The position numbers and the translations under genes were made by a program. The notes under the pieces were generated by a model that was not told the origin of the DNA, did not search any database, and saw only the letters and a list, made by a program, of their open reading frames with translations. 64,000 nucleotides of DNA from Octopus sinensis (taxonomy: Eukaryota), in assembly GCF_006345805.1 (NCBI RefSeq), contig NW_021832279.1, positions 48,286 to 112,285 on the forward strand, in the 5' to 3' direction. Shown in pieces: positions 28,656-56,868 of this stretch; position 1 is the stretch's first letter; each line of letters opens with the position of its first letter.

Positions 28656-30256
28656 TGTCACGCGCCATAAATGAAACGCGTGCCTAAAGTGAAACGCCGT
28701 GACCTTGAATTTAACCTTCAATTAAGCTCTTGACAATTATCAAGTCAATATTAAAGATGATTGCGCACTTTGAGATAATATTATCGAAATGAGATTTGCC
28801 AACATTGTAAAGGATGATCAGGAGTATAAGAATATTCTTGATTTTTTAATAAATAATACAATACCAGAAGATTTTTCAAGACTAAAAAGATTTCGTTTTC
28901 TCAAAAAATGTAGAAATTTTGTAAATTCTGGAGGTACTATTAAATCTAATGATAGGTGTGCTATATTATAAACAATCTGATGGAAACAAAATATTGGTAA
29001 TTGCCTCAAATGATTTCGAATCCATGAAACTGCATTGTGAAAGGATTCATTCAATTTATCACTATGGATTTAATAAAATGGAAGAGTATTGCAAAAATAA
29101 TTTTTGCATAATCAATCGAAACATAATTAGGGATGTAATATCATCATGCCACAAATGTCAGCGAAGTCAGCCCTTAAAGAGAAAATATCCACTAGTCAAC
29201 ATAGTAGCCAAAGAACCTCGAGAACGGTTCATTCAATAGCTTATTTTTAGCTATCAAGTTGATTTAGTCGATCTTTCGTTTTATGCAGATATAAATGATT
29301 CCTATAAATATCTTATGAATGTCATAGATATTTATTCAAAATTTTGCTTTGCTAAAAAATAGAAAATAAAGAAGCAGTTACAGTTTCGGAATCATTGAAA
29401 ACTATATTTCTTTCCTATGGTCCACCAAAAATTCTGCAGTCTGACAACGGAACAGAATTTGTTAATTCAGAAATAACGTCATTATGTGAAGAATTTAAAA
29501 TAATTCATAAAAGGGGACGTCCAAGACATCCAGAATCACAGGGACAAGTGGAGCGTTGCAATCAAACCATTTGCAGATGGATTCAAAAAGAACTCACAGA
29601 CAAACAGAAAAAATGGGTGGATGTGTTAGAAAAAATTGTATATCAGTACAATATTTCAATTCATTCTTCTATAAATATGTCACCATTTATGGATTTTTTC
29701 CGAACAAGAGGATATAACATTTCTTATTATAATGATGATGAATTAATTGAAGAACATGAAAATCAAACTATCATAAATGACAAATATCTTGAAAGAATGG
29801 AACGAAATTTTTCAAAAACATTGAAAGAAATTGCAATTGGAATAATGTTTTGCTGAAAAAAGATTTTGATACAAATCAAAGGACGAAGAAGCGAAAATTA
29901 GAATCTTTTTATCATCAACAAATCTTTACTGTTGAAGATTTAATTTCAAATAATAGAGTTAAAATAAAAGATCAAGATGGAAATGAAAAAATAGTATTTA
30001 AATCATAAGTTAAAAAAATTTAGACAGGTAAATTTTCAGGTTAAAATATTTTTAATTTTTTGGTAATTTTAAAATGGCTAACCATTATTTAAATAAATTG
30101 TTAATCTTTCAAACGATAATAATAAAAAATTGATTTCTCGGTTTTATTCCTGTTTTCATCAAAGGATTGTTAATTTTATTTTCGAGGTTTTTTGTGGTTT
30201 TCTCAAGGTTCACAGCGTTTCACTTTAGGCACGCGTTTCATCCATTGCGCGCGACA
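28656..30256 (+). mobile_element. Ginger2/TDD-like TIR transposon with Gypsy-type integrase (Ginger A), near intact
   Basis: ~53-bp TIRs TGTC..GACA; 5-bp TSD GTAAT; HHCC, QVD, QSDNG..35..E; introns 28934-28955 and 29227-29250; remaining breaks in homopolymers. Confidence 0.9.
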
Positions 30257-30795
30257 GTAATTAATTAAATCTTTTTTGTGTGTCGCTTTTTTGGCTGCTG
30301 CTACTCTGCCTGCCGCATCTCCGCCTGCCCCATTTCCACCAGTGGTTTGTCTAATCAAGGTCACTAAGCTAAATCTCCGGACTATAAAGGCTCTTAAGCA
30401 TTATCTTAATTGGCTGTTAAAAAAATTAGACACGTTGTTGCCGTGGCGGCAGAGATTTTTTTTGTTTATACTATTTTACAAATTTTTAAAGTTTTTTTTT
30501 GTTTTTTTTATTTTTTTGTTTTTAAATTTTTTTTTTTTTAAATGACAAACTTATTGTTAATAAACGAAAAGAGTTAAAATGCGCAGCGAATCGACTGGCA
30601 ATTCCCGCGCATGATGGCCAATGAGATCCTTTGAAAGAGTCTGATCGACTCGTTGGGATCTTTCGTGGCAACCACGAGCTTAGATCCAAGGCGACGTTTT
30701 TAAATTATTTATTTTTATTTGTTTTTTTTTATTTTTTTGTTATTTTCTAAAAATTCAACCGGATTGAATTTTTAAACTCCTTAGATCCCTCTGGA

Positions 30796-31212
30796 ATGTC
30801 GAATCATCTTTTAAAGTTAAAGATAGGCGTTCCAGTGGTTTTATTACGAAATCTTGCGCCACCTAAATTATGCAACGGAACGAGGTTAGTTATCAAAAAT
30901 TTGATGGCTAACGTAATAGAGGCGACGATATTAACAGGTAAGTATAGAGGTGAGGATGTTTATATTCCACGAATTCCGATAATTTCTGATGAATTACCAT
31001 TTAGATTTAAAAGGCTGCAATTTCCTTTGAGGATGAGTTTTGCAATGACAATAAACAAGGCCCAGGGACAGTCATTAAAGGTAGTTGGGTTATTTTTAGA
31101 GAGTGAGTGCTTTTCACATGGACAGCTGTATGTGGGATGCTCGAGGGTAGGCAGAAGAGAAAATTTATTCATATATGCCAAGGACGGACGACAAACATCG
31201 ATTGCACTGTGA
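30796..31212 (+). mobile_element. C-terminal fragment of a Helitron PIF1 helicase
   Basis: [32 protein letters not shown] and [13 protein letters not shown] motifs. Confidence 0.9.
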
Positions 31213-31973
31213 TTGCACATTCTGTCAAAGTCAAATATGATAATAGCTTTAATTTTGATTCATGGTCGATAATGATATATGCATTTAATTTTAAAGAGAA
31301 AAACATAGGATGAATTGAATTTCTTTATCGCGAATAATTGGGAGTTCATCATTGTTAATATTTTCGCTGTCGTTTTCATCAGGATATTCTTAATACGTGA
31401 GATTTTTGCCTGGAAGGTTTTAATGGACCTCATCATGAATGTCGAGGACATTCGCGTTGTTCATTTTAACCAAAATGCAGAAAATTTTTTTTAATTTTTT
31501 TTTAGGGGGAAGGTTTTAAGGACCTCATCATGTAAGTCGAGGACATCGTAGTTGTTCATTTTAACCAAAATGCAGAAAATTTTTTTTAATTTTTTTTTGG
31601 AGGGAAGGTTTTAAGGACCTCATCATGTAAGTCGAGGACATCGTAGTTGTTCATTTTAACCAAAATGCAGAAAATTTTTTTTAATTTTTTTGGGGGGAAG
31701 GTTTTAAGGACCTCATCATGTAAGTCGAGGACATCGTAGTTGTTCATTTTAACCAAAATGCAGAAAATTTTTTTTTAATTTTTTTGGGGGGAAGGTTTTA
31801 AGGACCTCATCATGTAAGTCGAGGACATCGTAGTTGTTCATTTTGACCAAAATGCAGAAAAATTTTTTTTAATTTTTTTGGGGGGAAGGTTTTAAGGACC
31901 TCATCATGTAAGTCGAGGACATCGTAGTTGTTCATTTTGACCAAAATGCAGAAAAATTTTTTTTAATTTTTTT

Positions 31974-32719
31974 GGCGGACATTCCTCTGCCGTCGACACG
32001 TACTGGCAAGCTCGTTATCTATGCTGACGATATCCTGGTCATGGATACCTCGAAAAGGATATCGCAGTCTTGGAGACGACTGAAATCATACATTGCAACG
32101 CTAAAGATGTGGACTATAGAGAAGGGTTTGACCCTAGCACCGGAGAAGAGCACCATTTCATGGTTGCGGAGAGGGAGTCGCTATGCGGAGTCTTGTGCAT
32201 ATGCGATGAGTAGCTATGTGATGGATCTCTCGAAAAGAAAAAATCTTTCTTACCTGGGAGCAACCATTAACTGTCGTGGCTCGTACGTAGAGCATATAGC
32301 AAATCAGAGAAAGAGGAGTGTGAGGATCCTCAAAAGCTTAACCAGGTTCCATCTGGATCCGGAAACGTACATCTACGTATACAAAACATGTGTGCAGCCA
32401 GTCCTCACATATGGCTACGAGGGCTGGTACGGTACGGAGGAGAGTGACTACCTGATCGAACAGTTGGAAAAGACAAGACGTTTCGCTATGAAATTGGCTT
32501 ACGGAGTACAACTTGACGGAAGGCTAAAAGACTCACAAGAATCCTCTGTGCCCACGATCCGGATGGTCTTGGAGAATTGTCGTCAAACATGACTAGTATT
32601 GGGGATACGCATGGAAAGAGACACTTCGGTGCCTTGTTTTTATCTCCCCGCCGATGTTTTTCTTCCTTGTTTTTCTTTTTCTTTTCGCTCAATAAACACT
32701 ATTCTATTCTATTCTATTC
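31974..32719 (+). mobile_element. 5'-truncated LINE 3' end, copy 1, (TATTC)n tail
   Basis: YADD, YLG and PVLTYG; related to the C-terminus of the 25551 ORF; inserted in the T-run of the 95-bp repeat. Confidence 0.88.
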
Positions 32720-32911
32720 TTTTTTGGGGGGAAGGTTTTAAGGACCTCATCATGTAAGTCGAGGACATCGTAGTTGTTCATTTTAACCAAAATGCAGAAA
32801 ATTTTTTTTAATTTTTTTGGGGGGAAGGTTTTAAGGACCTCATCATGTAAGTCGAGGACATCGTAGTTGTTCATTTTGACCAAAATGCAGAAAATTTTTT
32901 TTAATTTTTTT

Positions 32912-33659: not shown

Positions 33660-33805
33660 TTTTTTGGGGGGAAGGTTTTAAGGACCTCATCATGTAAGTC
33701 GAGGACATCGTATTGCCAATTTGAAGTTGGTGTGCACACACAGACAGACAGACAGAACGACAGACAGACAGACAGACACACACCATACCATTTTATTATT
33801 AAGAT

Positions 33806-34170
33806 TTATTTATTAATGACCAAGAGACCAGGTAAGCCAGTTAATTATAATCCCCGCGAGTCCCCGATTCAAGCGAGGGAGATCTTTCTGAAAGGTTCGA
33901 TCCTGTCCACGTGATCGGACTGAGACGACGATGTCCCACGGTCAGAGTTCTAGAAGTCCTTTTTCGGTAGGCATTAAGTGCCTTCTGAGCGTTTCCATGT
34001 CCGATTAGAAGTTTTAACTGACATGGTGGACCCCATAACGCCACGCTAAGACCGGAAAGAAGGTAAGAGACCCCCTTTTTTCTACTTTGTCGTGCCAGAA
34101 GTACTCATTGCCTCGCGGGCAGGCGAACGATAACGAGAATTGACCCCAGAATGAAACTAGCCTCCCTCGG
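33806..34170 (-). mobile_element. Degenerate LINE 3' end abutting the 28S
   Basis: LLIGHGN..AYRKR-like C-terminal motif and TAAA tail; weak. Confidence 0.4.
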
Positions 34171-34174
34171 AATC

Positions 34175-37100
34175 GGAAATGTATACGATACCAAGTTCTA
34201 TCGAACTGGACTTCCCAGAGAAAGTGAAAGGCCTGTAGTAACTGTGTACGTTTTCCTGCAAGCATCGTTAGAGTCGGGTTGCTTGTGAGTGCAAGCTAAA
34301 GTGGGTGGAAAGCTTCACCTAAGACTAAAAAATGCACGAGTTCGATAGCGAACAAGTACCGTGAAGGAAAATTGAAAAGAACTTTGAGAAAAGGGTTAAA
34401 AGTGCGTGAAACCGTTTAGAAGGAAGCAGATAGAGCCTTAACGCTTTGCGTTACAGTTGGGACGCAAAGCAGCTGTAATGAGTGTTCTAACTGGTTGCTA
34501 GTTTGGATGTGCCCTTTTGATGGCTGTGTATACTTTATTGTTAGGGTAATGATTCTTGCAGCTTGTTGGTGTTTTATCCGACCCGTCTTGAAACACGGAC
34601 CAAGGAGATTACCGTATTAGCAAGTCTAATGGAGTTATTCCATGCGGCGTAATGAAAGTAACTGGATGTGACGGTGTTAAACCTGCAACATACGCCCCTA
34701 ATTGTAACTACGGTTTATTAGGGAAGTGTTAGCTAATGCGTTAAGACCCGAAAGATGGCGAACTATACCTGGTTAAAATGAAGCAGTGGAAACACTGGTA
34801 AAGGTTATCGCGGTTCTGACGTGCAAATCGATTGTCGAAGCTGGGTATGGGTATAGGGGCGAAATACTAATCGAGCCATCTAGTAGCTGGTTCTCTCCGA
34901 AATTCTCTCAGGATAGCTGGTGTTCGTAAAAAGTTTTATATGTTAAAGCGAATGATTAGAGATCTGTGCTCAGATTGGGTGCATACTATTCTTAAACTTT
35001 AAAAACGTGAGATATGTGGCTCACTTGATTAAAGGCACATATAGAATTAGAGTACCAAGTGGACCAATTATGATAATCATGACTGGCGCTGTGGGATGAA
35101 CCAAAAGTCTAGTTAAGGTGCCTGACTAGACGCACACAGGATACCATGAAAGATGTCAGTTGATTATGACAACTGGAAGGTGACTATAGAAGTCGGAATC
35201 CTCTAAGGAGTGTGTAATAACTAGGGCAATTTTTTTCAGGCACTTAAAATTTATTTTTAGGACCTTAAAAATAGGCATTTTAGGACTTTATTTTAATTTT
35301 AGGACTTTATTCTACATTTTTAGGCACATTTTAAAAGGTATTAAATCAAAAAGTCGTAAAAAATTATTTGTTATAGTAAGGTATTAAATAATTTTTGACA
35401 TTTTCCGCATTGAAACCTCTATCTTTAGTAATTAATTTTTTAAGCATAGAAAATGCTCTTTCAACGGTTGATGATGTACACTGACATTTTCTTATTAGTC
35501 CATATTCTTCAGGGGAGATATTACTTTTCTCCATTTCTATAATTGATTCTATGTCATTTTGTGTAATCTTTTTGTATGTATTCATTTATTTCTGCATTAT
35601 CAGACGGAAATTTTAACAAACAAAGATTGAATGTGCATCATTATTGTATAACTTGTGGATTCCATTTTTTCAATATTTGATTAAGTATCTGATAATTTTC
35701 ATTTATTTCCATTAGACTTTTTCTTAAGGTTGGCGATTCAATTGCTTGTTTTACTTTTTTAACTAATATTCCGTCGTCTTTGAAATTCTCCACAATTTCA
35801 GCAATTGATACAAAATTATTTGCATAATAGTATGCTGCTTGCAGCCAACTACCCCATCTAGTTATGATGACGTCGGGCGGATAACCAATTGTAGAAAACA
35901 TTTTTTTTCTAGTTTTGTTTTTCACTATTGATGTCTTTATAGTCGCAATAAGATTATCAACGTCCGAATAATACGCCTTTACTCTGAGACAGCAATTATG
36001 TAACAAATGTGCAACACATGTTACATGGAACATCCTAGGATAAAGCATTTTCAATGTTTTTCCGGCTAAAAATAATTCAACAAACTACCCAAAATCATAT
36101 ACGGGGCTGCATCAGAAAGAAAAAGAAGAAAATTATTGCGTATAATCTCGAATTTTTTAATCTCTTCATCGATAATCTGAAGAATTGTGTTAGCAGTTAC
36201 AGATTCATATAAAGGTTCACACGAAATTAAATAGGTCTTCTCTGGATAAGCGATATTCCCAATGAGAACAACTACAAACTTCTGTCCATTTACGTCACCC
36301 TCGTCAACAACCATAAAATCTTTTGAGATCTAAAAATTAATCATTTGTTAACCTTAGATCACTTTTATACTTGGATAATTTTTGTTCACTGATTGCAGGA
36401 ATACAATTGCGACAGGCTGATGGGAAGGAAGCGAAATATTCAATTTTTCAAACAATCCCTTTAAGCTGGATTATTGAGCTTATGAAGAGGAATGTTTGCT
36501 TCAGAAAAGGCTTTGGCAACTTCCATCGGCATACTCTGAAAGTCTTCCGTTCGGTTTGACCGTTGAATAGGGAATCTAAGGATTGTTGGAATCCTTCATT
36601 GTTATCTAAAAAAAATAATTTTAAATTACTCAAAAGCTTTAGATGTTTTGTAGATTGTCTATGCTGATCAATATAATTTTTTTTGATGCATTGACGTAGA
36701 TCATACATATTTTACAATATAGACTGCCTTTAATCACTGTGAATTCTTTTACGTAAGTTTCATAGGCTTTTAGAGCTTTAGACTTTATTGTAGAACGTAC
36801 ACGTGGCATTTGAACACAAAAAAGTAATTTATAGCGTGCCTAATTTGTTATTTTTAAAATATTTTTTGTAACATTTAAAAATAATTTATTTTAAAAATTT
36901 TAAGACCTTAAAAAAATTTTAGGACCTTAAAAAAATTTTTTATTTTTAGGACCTTAACAATTTTTTAAGCATTTAAGGCATTTATAACTCGTTGTAGATA
37001 AATCTATTTTAATTAAATTATAGCTTAAATTAATTATTTAAATAAATAGACCTTTTGGTGCAAAAAGGCATTTTAGGCAAAAAATTGCCCTAGTAATAAC

Positions 37101-38023
37101 TCACCTATCGAATTAACTTGCCTTGAAAATGAATGGCGCTGTAGCGTTTGACCTATATACTAGGCCGTTGTAGCAGTTTGACTGGCTTTGGCTAGTGAGA
37201 AAAGATAGGCTACGATGAGTAGGAGAGACGTGGCGGTAGCATGGAAGCCAAGCATGTGAATGCTGGTAGAGCTGTTCACTAGTGCAGATCTTGGTGGTAG
37301 TAGCAATTACTCAAATAAGAACTTTGAGGGCCTATGTTGAGAAGGGTTTCATGTGAACATGAGTTGTACATGAGTTAGTCGGTCCTAAGTACGTTGTCAA
37401 GTCATTTGAAATGTGTGCAAAAGAGAATGGGGTTAATATTCCCGAACCTAAGAAGGCTGTTTATGCGGCGACGCTGTTGTAACAGTCTAGGACGGCAGGT
37501 GTTCTGGGAAGAGTTATCTTTTCTTCTAAAGGGTCGGTTTCTCTTAAAATGGTTTAGCCAGCGAAAGAGAAGTTGTTGATCATTACGATCATATCCGCAG
37601 AGCATTGCAGTTTTTGCTGTGTCCAGTGTACACCTGACGTTTCATAAAACGCCTGTTACAGTTTAACAGTCACTTGGGCCGTACCAATAACCGCAGCAGA
37701 TCTCCAAGATTAGCAGCCTCTGGTCAATAGATAAACGCTGGTAAGGGAAGTCGGCAAACTAGATCTGTACCTTCGGTAGAAGGATTGGCTCTATGGGTTG
37801 AGTCTTTACTGCTGTTTGTTTGATTGCTGCGTAAGTGGTAGTTGAGCATTGAGTAGTAGGACAGTGAACAACCAAAGTAGAACTGGCACGGAGAAGGGGA
37901 ATCTGACTGTGTAATAACAACAAAGCAGTGCAATAGCCGTAAACGGTTTTGACGCAGTGTGATTTCTGCCCAGTGCCCTGAATGTCAGCGTGAAGAGATT
38001 CACTTAAGCAAGAGTAAACGGCA

Positions 38024-38063
<40 letters not shown>

Positions 38064-39150
38064 AATTTAATTGATGACGCGCGTGAATGGATTAACGAGA
38101 TTCCCACTGTCCCTATCAGCACTCTAGCGAAACCACAGACGGGGTAACGGGCCCGTGACAATCAGCGGGGAAAGAAGACCCTGTTGAGCTTGGACTCTAG
38201 ATTGGCATTGTAGGAGGAACATTGGGGATATAGTAATAGGTGGGAGCTGTTCCGCAGCGAAAATGTAAGACAACTTCCTCAGTCGTCTTCCTACTAATTC
38301 AGTAATACCGTGCTTCCTTAATGGGAAAGTTTGCAGTGTAAAGCCCGTTCGGGGTCGATCGGATCTGAAACAGTGTCATTGGGAGTTTGGCTGGGGCGGT
38401 ACATCTGCTAAACAATAACGCAGATGTCCAAGGTGAGCTCAGTGGAACAGAAAGCTACCATAGCGCGAAATGGTAAAAGCTCGCCTTATTTGGATGTTCA
38501 GTACGTATGCAAGGCGCGAAAGCGTGGCCTATCGATCCTTTTATTTTTATAAGCTTTAAGTTAAAGGTGACAGAAAAGTTACCACAGGGATAATTGGCTT
38601 GTGGCACCCAAGCGTACATAGCGACGTGCTTTTTGATCCTTCGATGTTGGCTCTTTCTAATCATTTGCGAAGCATAAATCGCAAAGTGTAGGATTGTTCA
38701 CCCACTACAGGGAACGTGAGCTGAGTTAGACTATCGTGAGATAGGTTAGTTTTACCCTACTGATTGAGTGTCGTTGCCACAGTAATTCTGCAAATTATGT
38801 ATGGAACTGCAGAGTCAGACATTTGGTTCATGCACTTGACTGAAAAGTCAGTGGTGCGAAGCTATCGTCTGAAAGATAATAACTGAACGCCTCTAAGTTA
38901 GAATCTTGACTGGCTGCAACGATATTGTTCGAAACTCTTGTATAGCAAATTTATGCTTTTATGCTGCTACTGGCTTGGTGTCGTTGATAACACTAAAAAC
39001 TGTTGTTACACCAGGTTGACTTGCATTTTCACCGAGCTTTGTGCTAAATTATATGCAAACGACATATACTGGCATTAGAACTGTAGTGACGAAAGCAACG
39101 TATAGTGGCGATCTACTGAGGTCCATCCCTTTGCCTAAAATTTGTCCGCT
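34175..39150 (+). rRNA. 28S (LSU) rRNA, highly divergent, 5'-truncated and interrupted by a hAT; probable pseudo-copy
   Basis: Conserved blocks GAGTCGGGTTG, GAACAAGTACCGTGA, ACCCGTCTTGAAACACGGACCAAGGAG, GCAGATCTTGGTGGTAGTAGCAA, TAACTATGACTCTCTTAAGGTAGCCAAATGCC and GACAGAAAAGTTACCACAGGGATAA. Confidence 0.95.
35222..37092 (-). mobile_element. hAT-like (CGGBP1-related/DUF659-type) DNA transposon inserted in 28S
   Basis: 14-bp TIR TAGGGCAATTTTTT; 8-bp TSD GTAATAAC at 35214-35221 and 37093-37100; C2H2 finger, VVDE, LSDAAPYM, HVTCVAHLLH, TRWGSW and VERAFSML; two 23-nt introns. Confidence 0.92.
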
Positions 39151-39214
39151 TGTCGGACGCTTCTACCATTATTTACAGGGTATTTCATTAATATATCCTC
39201 TAATTTCATAAATA

Positions 39215-40030: not shown

Positions 40031-40150
40031 AATATATCCTCTAATTTCATAAATAAATCGTCTTATTCCATAAATATATCCTCTTATTCCATAAATATAT
40101 CGTATAATTTCATCAATATATCCTCTTATTTCATAAATATATCGTATATT
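40031..40150. repeat. ~21-bp AT-rich minisatellite
   Basis: Degenerate ATATATCCTCTTATTCCATAA units. Confidence 0.7.
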
Positions 40151-40231
40151 ATAAACTTTATTAACAACAAAAAAACACCCAAGATAAAACAGTTAACTAA
40201 ACTAATCCGACGACCCGTCCGCATCCGAAGT

Positions 40232-40440
40232 CTGGCGTAATTTATTATGCAATTTTGGCGTTCCCTAGTTGTGACGATATACGGGTACTTGAGATTATGT
40301 AATTAATTGCGTAATATATTATGCAATTTGGGCGTTCCCTAGATGTAACGATATACGGGTACTTGAAATTATGTACTTGAAATTATGTAATTAATTGCAT
40401 AGTATATTATGCAATTTGGGCGCTTTCTAGATTTGACGAC
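40232..40440 (-). repeat. 74-bp satellite, about 3 units, inverted relative to the main array
   Basis: GGCGTTCCCTAG..GGGTACTTGAGATTATGTAATTAATTGCG is the reverse complement of the main monomer. Confidence 0.95.
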
Positions 40441-40466
40441 ATGCTATCTCCTTGTAAAATGACATA

Positions 40467-41381
40467 TGTCACGAGCCTAGGTTGTTACCGAGCCTAGGTC
40501 GTGACATTTCGCTTATTTTTCTATAAAGATTAAAAATTAATTTATCCCTAATCCTAATAAAATTATTCTTAATATTTAAAATTAATCTATTAAATATTAA
40601 AACAAAAATATCCGGATAACCATACATCTGTAATTGTAATAAATATATAAAGGGGTGTTTCTTCTGTGTTACTTATGTCGCGTTCTTTTGTAAGAGATAT
40701 GGATGAGTATCGATTGCGTGTTCATCAGTCAAAACATTCATTTAAAATTGGAGATAAGGTAAACTCAATTATTCTAAATTGTAGATAAGGATTCAGAAGG
40801 ACTATGTACCATCCTTCACTTGCACTCAAGAAATTCGAAAGTCCATACGGAGAAGTTTGTACAATAAGTGAAATCCTCCCGCATAATATGGTGGTCAGAG
40901 TTGAAATGGACGAAGGAACTACTAAGAAGACGCTTATGAAAAGAATTAAAAAATTTAAATAACATAATTTTGTCTTGATTGTTTTGTTAATAAAAAAATT
41001 TAAATCCTAATTAGCAGAGAAACATTTATAGCCGAACATTCAAATAGACAAAATTTTTTCGAATAAAATACATTTTCTGCGTATTTTTTTTATTTGAACA
41101 TTTTGATTTTTGAATTTTTCTTATTTGAACAAATAGCAATTCATAAATCAAAATAGTATTTTTAGTTAGGAAATCGATTTTAAAGCACAGACTAGTTGGC
41201 ATTAATTTTAAATTTTTATAATCGAAAATATTGGCATCCAATTCCATTTTAAGTATTGTCATTTTATAATATTTATTTTGACAAAGTCGATTTTGAAATT
41301 GAATTCAAATATTTTTTTGAATTTTTTTCTAAGTCCATAAGTGTAACGACCTAGGCTCGGTAACAACCTAGGCTCGTGACA
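40467..41381 (+). mobile_element. Non-autonomous Ginger derivative (Ginger C)
   Basis: 40-bp TIRs at 40467-40506 and 41342-41381 (39/40 match); retains a C-terminal tail (FKIGDK|IRIQKD..KKFESPY) similar to Ginger A, with a 26-nt intron at 40759-40784; TSD not clear. Confidence 0.75.
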
Positions 41382-44300: not shown

Positions 44301-46219
44301 ATTAATTACATAATCTAAGTACCCCTATATCGTCACATCCAGGAAACGCCTAAATTACAAAATATATTACGCAATTAATTACATAATCTCAAGTACCCCT
44401 ATATCGTCAAATCTAGAAAGCGCCCAAATTGCATAATATACTATGCAATTAATTACATAATCTCAAGTACATAATTTCAAGTACCCGTATATCGTTACAT
44501 CTAGGGAACGCCCAAATTGCATAATATATTACGCAATTAATTACATAATCTCAAGTACCCGTATATCGTCACAACTAGGGAACGCCAAAATTGCATAATA
44601 AATTACGCAATTAATTAAATAATATCAAGTACCCCTATATCGTCACATTTAGAAAACGCCCAAATTGCATAATATATTACGACACTATTTACATAATCTC
44701 AAGTAACCGTATATCGTCATATCTAGGGAAAGCCTAAAGTGCATAATATATTACACAATTATTACATAATCTCAAGTATCCCTTATAGTCAACATCTAGG
44801 GAACGCCTAAATTGCATAATATACACTATGCAATTAATTACATAATCTCAAGTACCCCTATATCGTCAAATCTAGAAAGCGCCCAAATTGCATAATATAT
44901 TACGCAATTAATTACATAATGTAAAGTACCCGTATATCGTCACATCTAGGGAACGCCCAAACCATAATAAATTACGCATTAATTACATAATCTCAAGTAC
45001 CCGTATATCGTCACAACTAGGGAACGCCTAAAGTGCATAATATACTACGCACAATTAATTACATAATCTCAAGTACACCTATATCGTCACATTCAGGAAA
45101 CGCCTAATTACAAAATATATTACCCAATTAATTACATAATCTCAGGTACCCCTATATCGTCACATCTAGAGAACGCCTAAATTGCATAATATACTATGCA
45201 ATTAATTACATAATCTCAAGTACATAATTTCAAGTACCCGTAATTCGTCAATCTAGGGAGCGCCCAAATTGCATATATTACGCAATTAATTACATAATCT
45301 CAAGTACCCGTATATCGTCACAACTAGGGAACGCCTAAAGTGCATAATATACTACGCAATTAATTACATAATCTCAAGTACACCTATATCGTCACATTCA
45401 GGAAACGCCTAAATTACAAAATATATTACCCAATTAATTACATAATCTCAGGTACCCCTATATCGTCACATCTAGAGAACGCCTAAATTGCATAATATAC
45501 TATGCAATTAATTACATAATCTCAAGTACATAATTTCAAGTACCCGTATATCGTCAAATCTAGGGACGCCCAAATTGCATATATATTACGCATTAATTAC
45601 ATAATGTAAAGTACCCGTATATCGTCACAACTAGGGAACGCCCAAATTGCATAATATATACGCAATTAATTACATAATCTCAAGTACACCTATATCGTCA
45701 TCTAGGAAAGCCTAAAGTGCATAATATATTACACAATTAATTACTCTCAAGTACCCCCTCTATCGTACAATCTAGGGAACGCCCAAATTGCTAATATATT
45801 ACGCATTAATAATTACATAATCTCAAGACACCAATTTCAAGTACCCGTATATCATTACATCTAGGAACGCCCAAATTGCATAATATATTACGCAATTAAT
45901 TACATAATCTCAAGTACCCCTATATCGTCAAATCTAGAAAGCGCCCAAATTGCATAATATACTATGCAATTAATTACATAATCTCAAGTACATAATTTCA
46001 AGTACCCGTATATCGTTACTACGCAATTAATTACATAATCTCAAGTACCCCTATATCGTCACATTCAGGAAACGCCTAAATTACAAAATATATTGCGCAA
46101 TTAATTACATAATCTCAAGTACCCCTATATAGTCACATCTAGGGAACGCCTAAATTGCATAATATATTACGCAATTAATTACATAATCTCTCAAGTCCCC
46201 TATATCGTTACATCTAGGG
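41382..46219 (+). repeat. 74-bp satellite array, roughly 60-65 units including 88-bp variants
   Basis: Monomer TCTAGGGAACGCCCAAATTGCATAATATATTACGCAATTAATTACATAATCTCAAGTACCCGTATATCGTCACA. Confidence 0.98.
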
Positions 46220-48386
46220 CAGGGGTCGGCAAAAGCAGGCTCGCGAGCCTTTGAAGGCTCTTTAACTTTTACGGTAGGCTCTTTTAATTTTTAATTATTT
46301 TTTTTTTATAAATGATTCAATTTTTAACTATTTTTTTTGTTTTGTTGATAACAAAAAATCTTTGCACGTTTAACATTAATTTTTTGTGGCACATCGATAT
46401 ATGCCTAGCAATAAAAAAAAGTAATAAAAAATCGATAATGCGCGACATTTTCAATCAAATGAAATACGCTGGAATTGGAATGGGAGAGTGTTTGTCCCCC
46501 TGGCTGTTGAGACGTCAGGAATACAGGGGCCTTCTACTCGGACCCTACTCCAGCGCATTGCCTCATTAATCAAAAGGGTTACCGGCGACCCGTGTGAGCA
46601 CCGGTATTTAATCAAAAGAATATCTATAGTCAGAGGCAATACTCTGGCTATTCGCCAATGACTATTTCTCTTTTGATTTGAAATATATTAATTGACTTTG
46701 AATGTAAAAAAATGGACTGAAACTTTTGCATTCACGACTAATTCAGAACACTACCGAAATGTCTCATTTGTCAGGAAACTTTGAATCAAAATAAAAAGTC
46801 GAATTTAGAGAGACACTTTAACACAAAACACTCAAATTTCGCAAAAAAATATCCAATTGGTGATTCTCGAAAGAAAGCTGTAGAAGAACTTGCAAAGAAT
46901 AATCTGATCGAGAATTCCGCTTTTAAATATTGGTATCACAATGCCAGGACTGCAAATATTGCCAGTTTTTTAATAAGCCACAAGATCGCAAAAAGGGGAA
47001 AACCATTTACCGATGGCGAATTTATAAAGGCATGTTTCATTAAAACCTCTGAAGAACTTTTTCACACGATTTTTCAAATAAGGTAGAAATCGTGAATAAG
47101 ATAATGAATATATCTTTATCTGCGAAAATAGTAGCCGACAGGACTTTAAAGATGTCTTCGAATGTATCTGTTCAACAAGTTTCTGACATGAAATTGTCTA
47201 ATTCAATTTCAATAGCAATAGATGAATCATGTGATATAAATGACATTGCACAAGTATCATTGTTCATGTCATACTTAGGTGTTTCTTCTTTGTTCGTTAT
47301 GTGTCTCGAGGTTTCCTGAGGCAAGAACTTTTGGCATTATTGCCTCTAAAGGGTCAAACCCGTGCTAAAGCCTGCAAGCATGTTGGGATCGAGAAAGGAT
47401 TTATAACTTTAATTAAAAGGAGAATTGATCATGAAGTGATTACTCTACATTGTATTATCCAGAAAGAAGCACTATCTGCGCAAACGTTTCCGAAAGAAAT
47501 TTTAGAAGTGATGAATTGGTCATAAAGATTACTAACTTCATTATATCAAGAGTAATATATTATTCTTGTATGCAAGAAGTCAAACTTTTTTAAATGAAGA
47601 AGTAAAATTAGAGAACCTCAAAAATTCTAGATAACAAAAAAGTAGAATTAAACAGAATACCAATTCCGATTAGCCTGGTGTTTCTATTGTTTGATAAAAT
47701 ATTAATAAATTAGTTATTTTATTACATTATTCCGATTTTAAATATAAAATATTGTTTCTAAAATTATATTAGCTAAATCAAATGAGAAACGGAGCATTCA
47801 AAAATAAGAAAAACAGCGATACAGACGAAAAGGATAACAAATTTAATAAAAATGACTATGAATATGATTTGGTTACTTTTTTCTGACATGGAAGAATCCA
47901 ATAAAAGATTTCATTTCTGTTTTCCGATGGTTTTAAAAATCTTCTAATATATTTTTAGAAAAATACGATAATTCTTATCAAACAAATATCCAAAATTCGT
48001 AATGTTACATAAATTTTTCTAGAAAAAATAATTCTTTTTAATTTGGTTTTTTCTTTTCTATTTTTTCCGATAATCAATTCTAATTCTAAAGAAATTTTTT
48101 ATTTTTTTATCTTACGAGTAAAAAATCTAGAATCAAACCTCAGATTAAAATTAACGACTTACGACCCAGACATTAACCAACTCTCCAAAGAAATGAGGAA
48201 TCACATTTCATTAATGTCTAATTAATTTAATTTTTTAAAATGAATTCTTAATTATTTTTTAATTAATGTATATTTAATTTTCATGCATAAAATTTTTGAC
48301 AAGTGGTAAAGGTGGCTCTTCAATTTTTCGAAATTTCCAAAAATGTTCAAAATGGCTCTTCTTCTCCAAGTATTTGCCGACCCCTG
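46220..48386 (+). mobile_element. hAT (SPIN/GTF2IRD2-like) inserted in the satellite, copy 1
   Basis: 14-bp TIR CAGGGGTCGGCAAA; 8-bp TSD ATCTAGGG; CLICQE, KIAKRGKPFTDGEF, AIDESCD and LHCIIQ; 25-nt intron at 47254-47278. Confidence 0.92.
46462..46709 (+). mobile_element. Short CRE-like 3' fragment nested in the hAT ORF (also at 53588-53836)
   Basis: KY..VFVPLAVETSG..RGN; poly-A; TSD AAAATGGA; removal restores FNQKWTETFAF. Confidence 0.8.
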
Positions 48387-48460
48387 ATCTAGGGAACGCC
48401 CAAATTGCATAATATATTACGCAATTAATTACATAATCTCAAGTATCCCTATATCGTATA

Positions 48461-49533
48461 CCTAGTTGTCGGATTCTAATTACCATGTACTGCAGAAAAC
48501 CCAATGAAAATTCCAGGCGGATCTTATAAATGTTAAAGATATAAAGAGTTTGACGATGGATGTAATTGGATACTGACAATTATTGACATCTACAGCAAAT
48601 TTGTTTGTCTGCAAATCTTTAAAAAATAAAACTGCTTCTGGTAAGACTTACAATTTAATTGAAGAAGTGGTGAATAAATTCCAAAATTGTTTTAATCAAT
48701 TGGATACTGTCAGATCTTGCAAACGGACAAAGGCTGGAATTCAAAACCAACTTATGGCTCAACTATGCGAGGAATAAATTTGAAATAAATTAGGGTGTAA
48801 TTGAGCGCTTTAACTAGATATTGACACGTGGTATGGCAAAACTGATGGATGAGAAAGGAACTAAAAATTGGAAACAATACGGCGGACATATTACGAACAA
48901 ATTTCGACCTCTCTAAAATCAAATTATACAACATGCTAAATTATACAACATGTCTTATTGTACAATTTCTCTACATAAAAAAATACGTAAAAATTGAAAC
49001 AATTTTTAGACAAAGTAACTTTTTCCTATAATACGACACACCACTCGGCGATCAATGAGACCCCCTTCACAAGTTTAGGGGTATTTCTGGAATTAACACT
49101 GTGATTCATGAAATACCAGTTATAATCTTATTTATAATTTAGATGAAAATAACGAGGCATCGTTTGTCGAAGATGAACTTAATGGTAAATTTACGATGTA
49201 TTTATTTTTAGAAACGAATAATAAAAATTGTAGGACGAATCCGTCATTAAAGCTACACAGATTTGAATCCTTATATGAAGAAAATGGAAAAGTAAAAAAT
49301 ATAATGTCTAAATACAGATTAATGGTTATTTGTCTTTCCTAACAAACATTTAGATCGAATTACGAAATAGTTACTATGAATAGAGATAAAAAATGTTAAG
49401 TTTTTTGATTTTTTAGCAATTATCTTTAGTCAGTAATTAGTGTCAAACTATGTAGGTCGCCCTGTCAATCTTGTCAACAATGAAGGTCGCTCTGGTCGCC
49501 AGCGTGGGATGGTCGCCAGCGTGGGTCGCGACA
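48461..49533 (+). mobile_element. Ginger integrase 3' part with right TIR (Ginger B), copy 1
   Basis: EKFQADL, IIDIYSKF and QTDKGLEF; ends GGTCGCGACA with internal repeats. Confidence 0.75.
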
Positions 49534-49730
49534 TATTATGCTATTTTGGGAGATTCCTAGATTTGAGGGTATTGGTTTACTTGAGATTATGTAATGAATT
49601 GCGTAACATATTATGTAATTTGAGGAAATCCCTAGATGGAGGATACGGGGGGACTTGAGATTGTGTAATGAATTGCGTAGTATATTATAAAATTTGTGGA
49701 GGTCCATAGATGTGAGGATATGGGGTACTT
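49534..49730 (-). repeat. Diverged inverted 74-bp satellite units
   Basis: TACTTGAGATTATGTAATGAATTGCG cores; continues at 50888-50916 beyond the LINE. Confidence 0.8.
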
Positions 49731-50882
49731 ATTTATTTTATTTATTTAAACACCAAGACCACGCTAAAAACCGAACAAATGTCACGTGATCCCGATGCAC
49801 TCAACCAGGGACCTCATTTTCGCTCGGTGGTCTTTCCACGAGCCCACACAAGATCGCACAGGGCGGCAGGCCGTTTTTGGCGGAGCAGTCGCTGGCGGGC
49901 CCAGGTTCAGCTTGATGAGGTCTTCCAGAGAGGCTGGACCGGGGCGTTGGCTATCAAGTGACCAACGATCGGTTAATCTGAGGGCCCTTTGTTGGGCCTC
50001 CTCGATCCTCGCGCCTCCTGTTGGACCACGATATCCGCGGACCCCATGATCCGCAAGCGTACGCAACACAGGGTTCGAAGTACTGGCGGTAGATATTCGC
50101 CAGTACCGGGTGCGACCCGTTTTCCAAATACCAGATAGAGTTCGCAGAATGTTCAGTTTATGTTCGCATTTGCGAAGGAGGTTGTCCACATGAGGGAAGA
50201 AACAGAGGTGCATGTCGAGGGTTACCCCTAGGACCGTCTGACTCCCGCAGAAAGGAACGGATATATTGTTCAGCTTTAAGTCGACTGACGTCCTTCCCAA
50301 TTTTTTATATCCGAGGTGAAGAGGGACGTGGCGGACTCGCGCCGCGTTTACCACGAGCCGGTTGTCCGTCAGCCATAGGTTCACCCTATCCAAGTTAGCT
50401 TGGAGCCTTTCAGAGGCCTTCTGGATGTCCCGGTCCCGTGAGGCTAGCACGATGTTGTCCGCGTAGGAGAGAACAATGTCATTGTTGTCGAGGAAGTGAT
50501 GGAGGTCTTCCAAAAATAGGTTGAAATGAGCCGGGGATAAGGGGGATCCCTGAGGTACTCCGTTGGGTAGAAGAAGAGATTTGGACTTCAGACCACCGAG
50601 GCACACCCTTCCTCTTCGTCCACTTAGGAAGTTGGTAATCCATATTTTTAGCTTCAGAGGAAAGTCGGATTGGAATATCTTCCTGGAGAGGAGCTTCCTC
50701 GAGACGGAATCGAAGGCTTTATGGATGTCGACGGAGCAGAGCACGGTCTTTTGGTGCCTCGGTTTGCTGGCAAAACCGGTACAGATGAAGTTTGACAAGG
50801 ATTGGAGGTACGAAGACGTGGACTTCGCCTTCCTAAAACCATGTTGAAAATGTCTTTCGGGTAAGAAAGCTTCTATTCTTGA
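49731..50882 (-). mobile_element. 5'-truncated LINE RT with (TAAA)n tail, copy 1
   Basis: VDIHKAFDSV, GVPQGSPLSP and YADN; candidate TSD TACTT. Confidence 0.87.
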
Positions 50883-50916
50883 TACTTGACTTGATATTAT
50901 CTAATGAATTACGTAA

Positions 50917-51736
50917 TGTCATCGTCCAGACCGGCCGGGCGCCAGATATCGGTCAGGTCAATTATCTAAATAATACAAAACAAATATTTTTCCTACAAAA
51001 CATTTCATTGCAAAAAAATATTGATAATAAAAAAATAAAAATCTTATTAATAAAAAGTTCTAAAAAGTTGAAAAGATTAGCATTAATCAATGGTTTTAGT
51101 TGAATTAACTCGAGACACCCTCGAAAAAATTAGGGAGTATTTGGAATCAGGCCACCTTGATGATTCCTTGAGTTCGGAAGAAAGGGCACGAATACGGAGA
51201 TATGCCAAAAAATTTAGTTTCAAGAAGAACAACACCTACATTTCTAAAAATGGCTCAAAGTTACGTTTTTTTTGTATCGAAGACACAGAACTTAAGAAAC
51301 TACAAAACAAAGGCCTTTTGACCTCTTGTTCGGAACTGATTTGGAGAAACCAAATAAAAAACTAACAAATTCTGAGGTCGTGAAAAAAAGGAAAAAAGCC
51401 CTTGAAAATATTGTAAAATCGGGAGAAAAAATGAAAAGGCGGAGAAAATGGAAATATGATGAAGTTTAAAGTGGCGATGAAATTTTAATACGCCATGATG
51501 GGGATGCAAACCCGGTTATAGAAATACCCATTATACGACGAGATATCTGCACAAAAATATATTGTGAAAAATAGGGATCGAGAACTCGTAACGATAATTA
51601 ATGAAGAGGATGAAAAGATCAAAGGATACATATTAGCAAGTAAAAAAACTTTAACTGCAAATATTCATTGGGTTCGTTCTGTGTTTTTTCTCGTGTCATA
51701 TTTACTTAATTGTGAAATAATTGTGCCATTGTTACA
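50917..51736 (+). mobile_element. Internally deleted Ginger (Ginger D), copy 1
   Basis: Starts TGTC; N-terminal helix region resembles the Ginger A N-terminus; C-terminal GDEILIRHDGDANP; integrase core missing. Confidence 0.55.
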
Positions 51737-53340
51737 TTTCAAGTACCCCTATATCGTCACATTTAGAAAACGCCCAAATTTGCATATATATTACGACACT
51801 ATTTAGATAATCTCAAGTAACCGTATATCGTCATATCTAGGGAAAGCCTAAAGTGCATAATATATTACACAATTAATTACATAATCTCAAGTATCCCTAT
51901 ATAGTCACATCTAGGGAACGCCTAAATTGCATAATACACTATGCAATTAATTACATAATCTCAAGTACCCCTATATCGTCAAATCTAGAAAGCGCCCAAA
52001 TTGCATAATATATTACGCAATTAATTACATAATGTAAAGTACCCGTATATCGTCACATCTAGGGAACGCCCAAATTCCATAATAAATTACGCAATTAATT
52101 ACATAATCTCAAGTACCCGTATATCGTCACAACTAGGGAACGCCTAAAGTGCATAATATACTACGCAATTAATTACATAATCTCAAGTACACCTATATCG
52201 TCACATTCAGAAACGCCTAAATTACAAAAATATTACCCAATTAATTACATAATCTCAGGTACCCCTATATCGTCACATCTAGAGACGCCTAAATTGCATA
52301 ATATACTATGCAATTAATTACATAATCTCAAGTACATATATTTCAAGTACCCGTATATCGTCATCTAGGGAGCGCCCAAATTGCATAATATATTACGCAA
52401 TTAATTACATAATCTCAAGTACCCGTATATCGTCACAACTAGGGAACGCCTAAAGTGCATAATATACTACGCAATAATTACATAATCTCAAGTACACCTA
52501 TATCGTCACATTCAGAAACGCCTAAATTACAAATATATTACCCAATTAATTACATAATCTCAGGTACCCCTATATCGTCACATCTAGAGAACGCCTAAAT
52601 TGCATAATATACTATGCAATTAATTACATAATCTCAAGTACATAATTTCAAGTACCCGTATATCGTCAAATCTAGGGAGCGCCCAAATTGCATAATATAT
52701 TACGCAATTAATTACATAATGTAAAGTACCCGTATATCGTCACAACTAGGGAACGCCCAAATTGCATAATATACTACGCAATTAATTACATAATCTCAAG
52801 TACACCTATATCGTCATATCTAGGGAAAGCCTAAAGTGCATAATATATTACACAATTAATTACATAATCTCAAGTACCCCTATATCGTTACATCTAGGGA
52901 ACGCCCAAATTGCATAATATATTACGCAATTAATTACATAATCTCAAGTACATAATTTCAAGTACCCGTATATCGTTACATCTAGGGAACGCCCAAATTG
53001 CATAATATATTACGCAATTAATTACATAATCTCAAGTATCCCTATATCGTCAAATCTAGAAAGCGCCCAAATTGCATAATATACTATGCAATTAATTACA
53101 TAATCTCAAGTACATAATTTCAAGTACCCGTATATCGTTACTACGCAATTAATTACATAATCTCAAGTACCCCTATATCGTCACATTCAGGAAACGCCTA
53201 AATTACAAAATATATTGCGCAATTAATTACATAATCTCAAGTACCCCTATATCGTTACATCTAGGGAACGCCCAAATTGCATAATATATTACGCAATTAA
53301 TTACATAATCTCAAGTACCCCTATATCGTTACATCTAGGG
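51737..53340 (+). repeat. 74-bp satellite, about 21 units
   Basis: Variant order matches ~44630-46219. Confidence 0.97.
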
Positions 53341-55517
53341 CAGGGGTCGGCAAAAGCAGGCTCGCGAGCCTTTGAAGGCTCTTTAACTTTTACGGTAGGC
53401 TCTTTTAATTTTTAATTATTTTTTTTTTATAAATGATTTCAATTTTTAACTATTTTTTTTGTTTTGTTGATAACAAAAAATCTTTGCACGTTTAACATTA
53501 ATTTTTTGTGGCACATCGATATATGCCTAGCAATAAAAAAAAAGTAATAAAAAATCGATAATGCGCGACATTTTCAATCAAAATGGAAATACGCTGGAAT
53601 TGGGAATGGGAGAGTGTTTGTCCCCCTGGCTGTTGAGACGTCAGGAATACAGGGGCCTTCTACTCGGACCCTACTCCAGCGCATTGCCTCATTAATCAAA
53701 AGGGTTACCGGCGACCCGTGTGAGCACCGGTATTTAATCAAAAGAATATCTATAGTCAGAGGCAATACTCTGGCTATTCGCCAATGACTATTTCTCTTTT
53801 GATTTGAAATATATTAATTGACTTTGAATGTAAAAAAAATGGACTGAAACTTTTGCATTCACGACTAATTCAGAACAACTACCGAAATGTCTCATTTGTC
53901 AGGAAACTTTGAATCAAAATAAAAAGTCGAATTTAGAGAGACACTTTAACACAAAACACTCAAATTTCGCAAAAAAATATCCAATTGGTGATTCTCGAAA
54001 GAAAGCTGTAGAAGAACTTGCAAAGAATAATCTGATCGAGAATTCCGCTTTTAAATATTGGTATCACAATGCCAGGACTGCAAATATTGCCAGTTTTTTA
54101 ATAAGCCACAAGATCGCAAAAAGGGGAAAACCATTTACCGATGGCGAATTTATAAAGGCATGTTTCATTAAAACCTCTGAAGAACTTTTTCACGATTTTT
54201 CAAATAAGGTAGAAATCGTGAATAAGATAATGAATATATCTTTATCTGCGAAAATAGTAGCCGACAGGACTTTTAAGATGTCTTCGAATGTATCTGTTCA
54301 ACAAGTTTCTGACATGAAATTGTCTAATTCAATTTCAATAGCAATAGATGAATCATGTGATATAAATGACATTGCACAAGTATCATTGTTCATGTCATAC
54401 TTAGGTGTTTCTGTTTGTTCGTTATGTGTCTCGAGGTTTCCTGAGGCAAGAACTTTTGGCATTATTGCCTCTAAAGGGTCAAACCCGTGCTAAAGCCTGC
54501 AAGCATGTTGGGATCGAGAAAGGGATTTATAACTTTAATTAAAAGGAGAATTGATCATGAAGTGATTACTCTACATTGTATTATCCAGAAAGAAGCACTA
54601 TCTGCGCAAACGTTTCCGAAAGAAATTTTAGAAGTGATGGAATTGGTCATAAAGATTACTAACTTCATTATATCAAGAGTAATATATTATTCTTGTATGC
54701 AAGAAGTCAAACTTTTTTAAATGAAGAAGTAAAATTAGAGAACCTCAAAAATTCTAGATAAACAAAAAAGTAGAATTAAACAGAATACCAATTCCGATTA
54801 GCCTGGTGTTTCTATTGTTTGATAAAATATTAATAAATTAGTTATTTTATTACATTATTCCGATTTTAAATATAAAATATTTGTTTCTAAAATTATATTA
54901 GCTAAATCAAATGAGAAACGGAGCATTCAAAAATAAGAAAAACAGCGATACAGACGAAAAGGATAACAAATTTAATAAAAATGACTATGAATATGATTTG
55001 GGTTACTTTTTTCTGACATGGAAGAATCCAATAAAAGATTTCATTTCTGTTTTCCGATGGTTTTAAAAATCTTCTAATATATTTTTAGAAAAAATACGAT
55101 AATTCTTATCAAACAAAATATCCAAAATTCGTAATGTTACATAAAATTTTTCTAGAAAAAAATAATTCTTTTTAATTTGGTTTTTCTATTTTTCCGATAA
55201 TCAATTCTAATTCTAAAGAAAATTTTTTATTTTTTTATCTTACGAGTAAAAAATCTAGAATCAAACCTCAGATTAAAATTAACGACTTACGACCCAGACA
55301 TTAACCAACTCTCCAAAGAAATGAGGAATCACATTTTCATTAATGTCTAATTAATTTAATTTTTTAAAATGAATTCTTAATTATTTTTTAAATTAATGTA
55401 TATTTAATTTCATGCATTAAAATTTTTGACAAGTGGTAAAAGGTGGCTCTTCAATTTTTCGAAATTTCCAAAAATGTTCAAAATTGGCTCTTCTCCAAAA
55501 GTATTTGCCGACCCCTG
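53341..55517 (+). mobile_element. hAT in the satellite, copy 2
   Basis: Same TIRs and TSD as copy 1; intron 54380-54404 restores IAQ|VFLFVRYVS. Confidence 0.92.
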
Positions 55518-55591
55518 ATCTAGGGAACGCCCAAATTGCATAATATATTACGCAATTAATTACATAATCTCAAGTATCCCTATATCGTATA

Positions 55592-56674
55592 CCTAGTTGT
55601 CGGATTCTAATTACCATGTAACTGCAGAAAAACCCAATGAAAAATTCCAGGCGGATCTTATAAATGTTAGAAGATATAAAGAGTTTGACGATGGATGTAA
55701 TTGGATACTGACAATTATTGACATCTACAGCAAATTTGTTGTCTGCAAATCTTTAAAAAATAAAACTGCTTCTGGTAAGACTTACAATTTAATTGAAGAA
55801 GTGGTGAATAAATTCCAAAAATTGTTTTATCAAATTGGATACTGTCAGATCTTGCAAACGGACAAAGGGCTGGAATTCAAAAACCAACTTATGGCTCAAC
55901 TATGCGAGGAATAAATTTGAAATAAATTAGGGTGTAATTGAGCGCTTTAACTAGATATTGACACGTGGTATGGCAAAACTGATGGATGAAGAAGGAACTA
56001 AAAATTGGAAACAATACGGCGGACATATTACGAACAAATTTCGACCTCTCTAAAAATCAAATTATACAACATGCTAAATTATACAACATGTCTTATTGTA
56101 CAATTTCTCTACATAAAAAAATACGTAAAAATTGGAAACAATTTTTAGACAAAGTAACTTTTTCCTATAATACGACACACCACTCGGCGATCAATGAGAC
56201 CCCCTTCACAAGTTTAGGGGTATTTCTGGAATTAACACTGTGATTCATGAAATACCAGGTTATAATCTTATTTATAATTTAGATGAAAATAACGAGGCAT
56301 CGTTTGTCGAAGATGAACTTAATGGTAAATTTACGATGTATTTATTTTTAGAAACGAATAATAAAAAATTGTAGGACGAATCCGTCATTGAAGCTACACA
56401 GATTTGAATCCTTATATGAAGAAAATTGAAAAGTAAAAAATATAATGTCTAAATACAGATTAATGGTTATTTGTCTTTCCTAACAAACATTTAGATCGAA
56501 TTACGAAATAGTTACTATGAATAGAGATAAAAAATGTTAAGTTTTTTGATTTTTTAGCAATTATCTTTAGTCAGTAATTAGTGTCAAACTATGTAGGTCG
56601 CCCTGTCAATCTTGTCAACAATGAAGGTCGCTCTGGTCGCCAGCGTGGGATGGTCGCCAGCGTGGGTCGCGACA
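55592..56674 (+). mobile_element. Ginger B, copy 2
   Basis: Duplicate of 48461-49533; 24-nt GTAAGA..AG intron at 55775-55798. Confidence 0.75.
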
Positions 56675-56868
56675 TATTATGCTATTTTGGGAGATTCCTA
56701 GATTTGAGGGTATTGGTTTACTTGAGATTATGTAATGAATTGCGTAACATATTATGTAATTTGAGGAAATCCCTAGATGGAGGATACGGGGGACTTGAGA
56801 TTGTGTAATGAATTGCGTAGTATTATAAAATTTGTGGAGGTCCATAGATGTGAGGATATGGGGTACTT

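Follow-up and report, generated by a model that had tools for sequence, protein, structure and literature searches.

Transposase genes in a stretch of DNA from the Octopus sinensis genome assembly are interrupted by segments of 22-26 nucleotides (nt) bounded by GT at the 5′ end and AG at the 3′ end. Are these segments introns, whose genome do they belong to, and did they arise within the transposons or descend from older, longer introns? The stretch is 64,000 nt long (hereafter the window) and lies in contig VCDQ01008639.1 of assembly GCA_006345805.1, an unplaced contig of 112,285 bp that carries an open reading frame (ORF) for ribose-5-phosphate isomerase A (RpiA). An earlier, sequence-only reading had listed segments of this kind in DNA transposons of the Ginger and hAT superfamilies. 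We find that they are probably spliceosomal micro-introns of the U2 (GT-AG) type, carried in their transposase genes by DNA transposons living in the genome of a dicyemid.

We examined the segments by a deletion scan based on homology. Profile hidden Markov models were built from relatives only, with the window sequence excluded. Every stretch of 0-39 nt (12-39 nt for the first Ginger A site) was then removed at all positions within 36 nt on either side of the site, and the resulting translation was scored in bits. The scan is blind to GT and AG. Scores are quoted below for the unspliced sequence and then for removal of the claimed segment. The RpiA gene near the start of the window served as a host-gene control. 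Its best deletion was 28 nt, with the score rising from 2.5 to 254.1 bits, and the 28-nt GT-AG segment tied for the top score.

Three Ginger elements, called A, B and C here, carry listed segments. Ginger A has an rve domain (7e-17) together with Integrase_H2C2, and its relatives, at about 40% identity, include KRBA2-like and SCAND3-named proteins. With a 5-bp GTAAT target-site duplication, KRBA2-/SCAND3-like matches and no OTU or Ulp1 domain, it looks like a cut-and-paste transposon of the Ginger2/TDD type. At its first site the best-scoring length was 22 nt, as claimed. Removal raised the score from 13.9 to 103.0 bits, with the top of the plateau at 106.2 bits, and the junction was gap-free in all ten relatives. 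The second site lies directly before the first catalytic D. Here the best length was 24 nt, and removal of the GT-AG segment (120.3 to 134.4 bits) tied for best.

Ginger B is present in two copies and is heavily decayed; its integrase core has lost 33 nt, and a TAG replaces a Gln codon. The best length at its site was again 24 nt, with the score rising from 103.3 to 116.7 bits against a best of 117.1 bits. In a tblastn comparison, 94 residues of the intron-less relative P0001 cover 102 codons of the window.

The remaining two sites of this kind are in hAT elements. One element is inserted into a highly conserved stretch of a 28S ribosomal RNA (rRNA) gene (GTGTGTAAYAAC/TCACCT) and has terminal inverted repeats starting TAGGGC. 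It is a pseudogene with at least four frame switches upstream of position 36350. It and its relatives, which are 40-46% identical, have a Pfam match to DUF659 only (weak in the window copy), and the conserved C-terminal motif VER[SA]FS aligns. At its downstream segment the best length was 23 nt; removal took the score from 92.8 to 320.6 bits, tying for best, and was gap-free in 12 of 12 relatives. The second element is SPIN-like. Its coding sequence begins at 53834 and is internally deleted, lacking the TDGA block and the C-terminal half, and its ends were looked for in the window copy and not found. The relatives reach 54% identity (42-48% for those aligned over their full length), and the full-length ones carry Dimer_Tnp_hAT, DUF4371 and a Spin-doc-type zinc finger; as far as these domains tell, the element would be Charlie/Buster-like. 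The best length was 25 nt, with scores of 231.0 and 259.6 bits against a best of 260.3 bits, and no gap appears when the product is aligned with DESCDIIDTAQVALFVRYI and other relatives. Both copies of this intron lie inside a segmental duplication, so we count them as one event.

Thus at five independent sites the best-scoring length is the claimed length, and the GT-AG segment lies within the top plateau of 6-17 positions. Taking f(GT) × f(AG) = 0.0026 together with the plateau sizes, the joint chance of this outcome is about 8e-9. All eight listed segments, representing seven events, measure 22-26 nt and run from GT to AG on the coding strand, as the sequence-only reading had it, whether the element lies on the plus or the minus strand. 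Five of the seven distinct segments start with GTA, as in the logo of Dicyema japonicum. The supported insertions are extra DNA relative to all relatives compared, and the junctions fall in gap-free alignment columns against 10 relatives for Ginger A, 12 for the hAT in 28S and 11 for the SPIN-like hAT. A search of protein collections found no near-identical spliced product. The supported introns, of 22-25 nt, are within the host range as judged from the 28-nt RpiA intron and the dicyemid median of 27 bp. The sense orientation, the GT-AG ends, the frequent GTA, the narrow range of 22-25 nt and the nearby RpiA intron lead us to regard the segments as most likely spliceosomal introns of the host type. 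The claim that unrelated DNA transposons carry short GT-AG insertions the size of host introns is borne out for four elements of the Ginger and hAT superfamilies.

Four of the supported introns shift the frame, and the 24-nt intron 2 of Ginger A contains an in-frame stop. If they were retained, three of the frame-shifting introns would lead to a stop within about 12 codons, and the SPIN-like one would be read for about 37 codons before a stop. The Ginger B intron neither shifts the frame nor contains a stop; being a multiple of three, it would on retention add eight residues unnoticed. This case recalls the deficit of stop-less introns of length 3n in Paramecium (Arnaiz et al. 2012, PMC3464196). 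A second intron-like segment in Ginger B, of 27 nt and in frame (GTAAATTTACGATGTATTTATTTTTAG), is found at 56325-56351 with a twin at 49185-49211. It shares the 3′ end TTATTTTTAG with two confirmed introns (the upstream segment of the hAT in 28S ends TTAATTTTTAG), and lies in a variable acidic region, where homology cannot decide.

The source of the DNA bears directly on the interpretation of such short introns. Introns of less than 30 bp have been reported among animals only in myxobolids (cnidarians) and in Dicyema japonicum, with the 5′ site reduced to GTa (Ogino 2010 as cited; PMC6543705; PMC6736024; PMC13644364). The introns of dicyemids have a median length of 27 bp, two thirds being shorter than 30 bp (Zverkov 2019, PMC6543705; Lu 2019, PMC6736024; PMC13644364). 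The D. japonicum genome has 36.7% GC and 48.9% repeats, and the species was collected from the renal sacs of O. sinensis (PMC6543705; PMC6736024; PMC13644364). The window agrees with this description in having an animal gene with an intron below 30 nt, a GC content of about 37%, abundant repeats and an origin in cephalopod-host material. It is eukaryotic, reads in the standard genetic code and has a GC fraction mostly between 0.30 and 0.45 in 2-kb windows. The RpiA protein is at best only about 44% identical to named animal RpiA proteins, molluscs included, and no protein search from the window gave a match above about 54% identity, except to the window's own RpiA ORF (P0056). On the basis of the 28-nt RpiA intron, the low RpiA identity, the GC content, the divergent 28S gene and the published profile of dicyemid introns, the window most likely comes from a Dicyema-like kidney parasite whose DNA was assembled along with that of its octopus host, and is probably contamination of the public assembly. 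Probable parasite sequence in a 112-kb contig concerns all users of the O. sinensis assembly.

A ciliate host with a non-standard genetic code was considered and dropped; the spliced frames of Ginger A and RpiA contain no in-frame TAA or TAG. As a further source of host introns we tried a gene resembling that for DNA polymerase kappa (POLK-like; 13021-11875, minus strand). It is collinear with the human protein and has no evident introns, but 1-nt frameshifts and two in-frame TAA codons interrupt it, and it may represent a processed pseudogene. The ends of the window, 1-2936 and 61090-64000, are direct copies that are 96.4% identical. The second RpiA copy is broken, and its intron (63450-63476) has lost one A and is 27 nt rather than 28 nt long.

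A simple explanation would account for the distribution of the introns. The normal intron of a dicyemid is about 20-30 nt long, and the transposon introns would be of the same kind as well as the same size. Cut-and-paste elements move as DNA, so that an intron in the transposase gene would be copied along with the element, and it would have been spliced when the elements were active. Retroelements pass through spliced RNA and would stay intron-free. The sequence-only reading had seen no introns in retroelements, and this agrees with the sole intact retroelement ORF of the window, that of a long interspersed nuclear element (LINE) of 873 codons, which is uninterrupted with no introns seen.

How the introns came to be in the transposons is a separate question, and the sequence-only reading had offered both gain de novo and shrinkage. 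The six supported intron positions all differ, and none is common among the families. Within Ginger, B reads through the second position of A, and A reads through the positions of B and C. In the alignments with 10, 12 and 11 relatives, no relative shows a break at any of the six positions. In the comparison with the closest homologues that the sequence-only reading proposed, all of the 10-12 nearest relatives per family are uninterrupted at the sites. Each of the relatives P0001, P0176 and P0180 has its gene on its contig as one unbroken ORF, that of P0180 being one exon of 1476 nt on a contig of 1.3 Mb. Since the positions differ and the aligned relatives are uninterrupted, the pattern leans towards lineage-specific gain, although the choice between gain and shrinkage is not settled. 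We consider the chances about evenly balanced that most of the introns arose within the families once these had diverged from relatives lacking introns, and did not come about by the shrinking of old, long introns. The stronger proposal, that DNA transposons from two or more superfamilies in dicyemids each gained several host-type introns of less than 30 nt after entering or diversifying in the lineage, we put forward tentatively, as somewhat more likely to be wrong than right. If true, it would mean ongoing intron gain in an animal whose host-gene introns have been described as keeping their positions and only becoming shorter. The families can be dated by the divergence of their copies, and would then provide a timed record of intron birth. 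They might also show that transgenes or transposons lacking introns are expressed poorly in a dicyemid host. Ginger A, Ginger B and the two hATs are the families in which gain and shrinkage could be separated and dated.

The alternative that survives best is that the introns are real but inherited: the ancestors of the Ginger and hAT elements would have possessed introns at the same places, and the dicyemid lineage would have done no more than shorten them, as in its host genes, without any gain de novo. There is precedent, in that Ginger1 elements elsewhere carry one to four canonical GT-AG introns in the transposase gene, some of them conserved, three into domesticated genes (Bao, Kapitonov and Jurka 2010, PMC2836005). 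Moreover, Ogino et al. (2010, as cited) call dicyemid host-gene introns shortened in their title. We nevertheless think inheritance unlikely, though it is the only alternative to be weighed seriously. Ginger A, B and C come from the same genome and share no position, and Ginger B has greater identity with the intron-less P0001 (42%) than with Ginger A (34%); these points, like the unbroken relatives, speak against inheritance.

Beside the precedent of Ginger1, several considerations weigh against our interpretation. Homologue collections favour single-ORF predictions and would hide intron-bearing relatives; the relatives that we used were mostly called as uninterrupted ORFs, so that the comparison is biased against intron-bearing homologues. 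A footprint of the mechanism of origin was not found, as the similarity between introns and exons was not significant relative to shuffles. In particular, the flanking microhomology suggested by the sequence-only reading was not upheld: comparing each intron with 40 nt of each flanking exon gave p = 0.04-0.99 over 18 tests, with nothing significant. An origin by tandem duplication or microhomology had been considered for the SPIN-like intron, where the read-through VSLFMSY resembles the exon sequence VFLFVRY by eye, and this too did not survive the shuffle test. The assignment of the host to the dicyemids is circumstantial, and splicing from the transcript is something that we infer from the DNA. 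Lastly, the copies are decayed, and some junctions require extra repair.

That decay is the basis of a second alternative, in which the segments are not introns at all but chance insertions or products of decay in dead copies, with GT and AG ends by accident. All of the transposon copies are pseudogenes, showing frameshifts, stops and deletions of the ordinary kind, and nothing in the window copies functions today. Nor is frame restoration informative by itself. We searched the full window for segments of 18-32 nt with GT..AG ends whose removal joins two ORFs of 50 codons or more, and counted 93, compared with 78-184 for control dinucleotide pairs, i.e., no excess. As this count is at the level of chance and the copies have ordinary 1-nt frameshifts, restoration of a frame is on its own no evidence for an intron, and we dropped the ORF-joining approach in favor of homology.

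Two of the seven distinct segments do leave the frame unrestored, and here the statement that every GT-AG removal restores the frame or the family consensus did not hold. At the upstream segment of the hAT in 28S (36330-36352), extra DNA is present and the conceptual join aligns gap-free, but the scan favours a deletion of 22 nt (104.0 bits); removal of the 23-nt GT-AG segment scores 1.8 bits. The frame shift between the upstream and downstream sequences cannot come from 23 nt, and one further 1-nt change is needed. We conjecture that a base was lost at the AGG/GT boundary of this much-decayed copy. For Ginger C, represented by a C-terminal fragment, removal of the 26-nt candidate lowers the score from 12.4 to 6.8 bits, and the best in-frame deletion of 15-30 nt gives 20.6 bits. 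When a second frameshift is also repaired by 1 nt, removal of the 26-nt segment gives 24.1 bits.

Accident is nevertheless very improbable as an explanation of the whole set. It would have to produce, at five sites, the exact length predicted by homology together with GT-AG ends in the sense orientation, for which the joint chance was given above; the other indels in the copies are of 1 nt or are deletions, and the sizes of 22-25 nt match the intron mode of the host. Removal at the level of DNA, like that of ciliate internal eliminated sequences, the smallest of which in Paramecium are similar in size to the segments here, is still less probable, given ends that are GT...AG and not TA...TA, a standard code, a host gene and transposons that look metazoan, and an RpiA intron of the same type.

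Spliceosomal micro-introns therefore being the preferred reading, how do they compare with known systems? Ginger1 elements are alike in their integrase-like rve transposase, TGT...ACA termini, short target-site duplications and canonical introns in the transposase gene; the difference is that Ginger A looks like a Ginger2/TDD element by the features listed above, and that the introns are of 22-24 nt. Paramecium has tiny host introns. Its Tc1/mariner elements Sardine, Thon and Anchois have predicted introns in the transposase ORF (Arnaiz et al. 2012, PMC3464196), and so are likewise DNA transposons with predicted introns in a tiny-intron host, but in a ciliate with another genetic code and belonging to another superfamily, whereas the host here is an animal. 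The micro-introns of dicyemid host genes are of the same size class (median 27 bp, most below 30 bp), with GT-AG ends and a reduced GTa, the RpiA intron being an example, but those reports concern host genes and not transposons. Term searches of the two dicyemid genome papers found LINE ORF2 as the only transposable element mentioned, and nothing on DNA transposons. In the CACTA transposases of plants, intron gain and loss have been traced phylogenetically (PMC4158355). There too the exon-intron structure of the transposase varies among families, but the introns are long and loss dominates, while the pattern here leans to gain.

The Drosophila P element and maize Ac are DNA transposons regulated by splicing, and the regulation has been demonstrated. 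By analogy, transposase expression in the elements described here would depend on the host spliceosome. The further suggestions of the sequence-only reading, that the introns restrict the elements to particular hosts or allow control of transposition by splicing, are speculation, every copy here being dead. Introns are already known in Ginger, hAT and other DNA transposons, and the tiny introns of dicyemid transposons are a modest extension of known biology. They extend the extreme intron size of dicyemids to mobile DNA, and reveal no new mechanism.

Table 1. Positions of the transposons, introns, intron-like segments and genes in the window; a slash marks the junction in the translation.
Feature	Position	Strand	Details
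Ginger A element	28656..30256	+	47-nt terminal inverted repeats (TGTCAC...GCGACA); GTAAT target-site duplication; one copy
Ginger A coding sequence	28789-30008	+	pseudogene; 1-nt frameshifts near 29352-29358 and near 29838
Ginger A intron 1	28934..28955	+	22 nt; GTACTATTAAATCTAATGATAG; junction FVNSG/GVLYYK
Ginger A intron 2	29227..29250	+	24 nt; GTTCATTCAATAGCTTATTTTTAG; in-frame TAG; junction PRER/YQVDLVDL
Ginger B copy 1	48401-49622	+	twin of copy 2
Ginger B copy 2	55532..56763	+	53-nt terminal inverted repeats; rve 1e-09
Ginger B intron, copy 1	48641..48664	+	exact twin of 55775-55798; absent from the earlier list
Ginger B intron, copy 2	55775..55798	+	24 nt; GTAAGACTTACAATTTAATTGAAG; in frame, no stop; junction NKTAS/EVVNKF
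Ginger C candidate intron	40759..40784	+	26 nt; C-terminal integrase fragment only, 40651-40959
hAT element in 28S rRNA gene	35222..37092	-	terminal inverted repeats TAGGGCAATTTTTT; 8-bp target-site duplication GTAATAAC at 35214-21 and 37093-100
hAT in 28S, downstream intron	36066..36088	-	23 nt; GTAGTTTGTTGAATTATTTTTAG; junction DAAPYMILA/GKTLKMLYP, split Ala codon
hAT in 28S, upstream intron-like segment	36330..36352	-	23 nt; GTTAACAAATGATTAATTTTTAG; near KSDLR/ISKDF
SPIN-like hAT intron, copy 1	47254..47278	+	25 nt; identical to copy 2
SPIN-like hAT intron, copy 2	54380..54404	+	25 nt; GTATCATTGTTCATGTCATACTTAG; junction DESCDINDIAQ/VFLFVRYV
RpiA host gene	2300-3077	+	exon 1 2300-2380; exon 2 2409-3077
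RpiA intron	2381..2408	+	28 nt; GT-AG; deletion scan, host-gene control
28S rRNA gene	34049-39145		Rfam LSU match; interrupted by hAT element
Intact LINE ORF	25551-28172	+	873 codons; AP endonuclease and reverse transcriptase by domain matches; uninterrupted

The remainder of the window is largely made up of repeats. The segmental duplication that holds both SPIN-like copies pairs 46400-51600 with 53522-58726; it aligns over 5.2 kb at 98.4% identity, with the copies about 7.1 kb apart, and contains the SPIN-like hAT, Ginger B and a LINE reverse-transcriptase fragment, followed by satellite DNA. A 74-nt satellite forms large arrays at 41270-46300, 51600-53400 and 58700-60600, with strong strand asymmetry (GC skew about -0.35), and has an inverted partial copy at 40235-40442.

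The 28S gene is divergent, with a GC content of 38%. We detected no 18S or 5.8S rRNA gene to accompany it anywhere in the window; it is an orphan copy lying among transposons. Specificity of its hAT family for ribosomal DNA is unsupported; the contig of the relative P0176 has a cystathionine-beta-synthase-like gene beside the element.

A decayed pogo/Tigger-like (DDE_1) transposon lies at 14428-15088 on the minus strand, and contains a 28-nt segment at 14821-14848, GTAGATTACCTTAATATTTATTTTTTAG, between KERFNF and MTGTDQKIPLMIGK. Its removal leaves the frame unrestored, and the Pfam DDE_1 match starts downstream, so that comparison of the spliced and unspliced forms is uninformative. If real, this would be a third superfamily with micro-introns.

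The window also holds LINE fragments and a Helitron helicase fragment. Exact-sequence look-ups of the intact LINE ORF and of P0020 gave no match. The LINE ORF has a GC content of 53%, compared with about 37% in the surrounding DNA. Tandem arrays of a 93-95-nt repeat at 24400-25560 and 31210-32070 are mutually inverted, with arms of up to 290 nt at 98% identity, and flank the intact LINE, Ginger A and the Helitron fragment.

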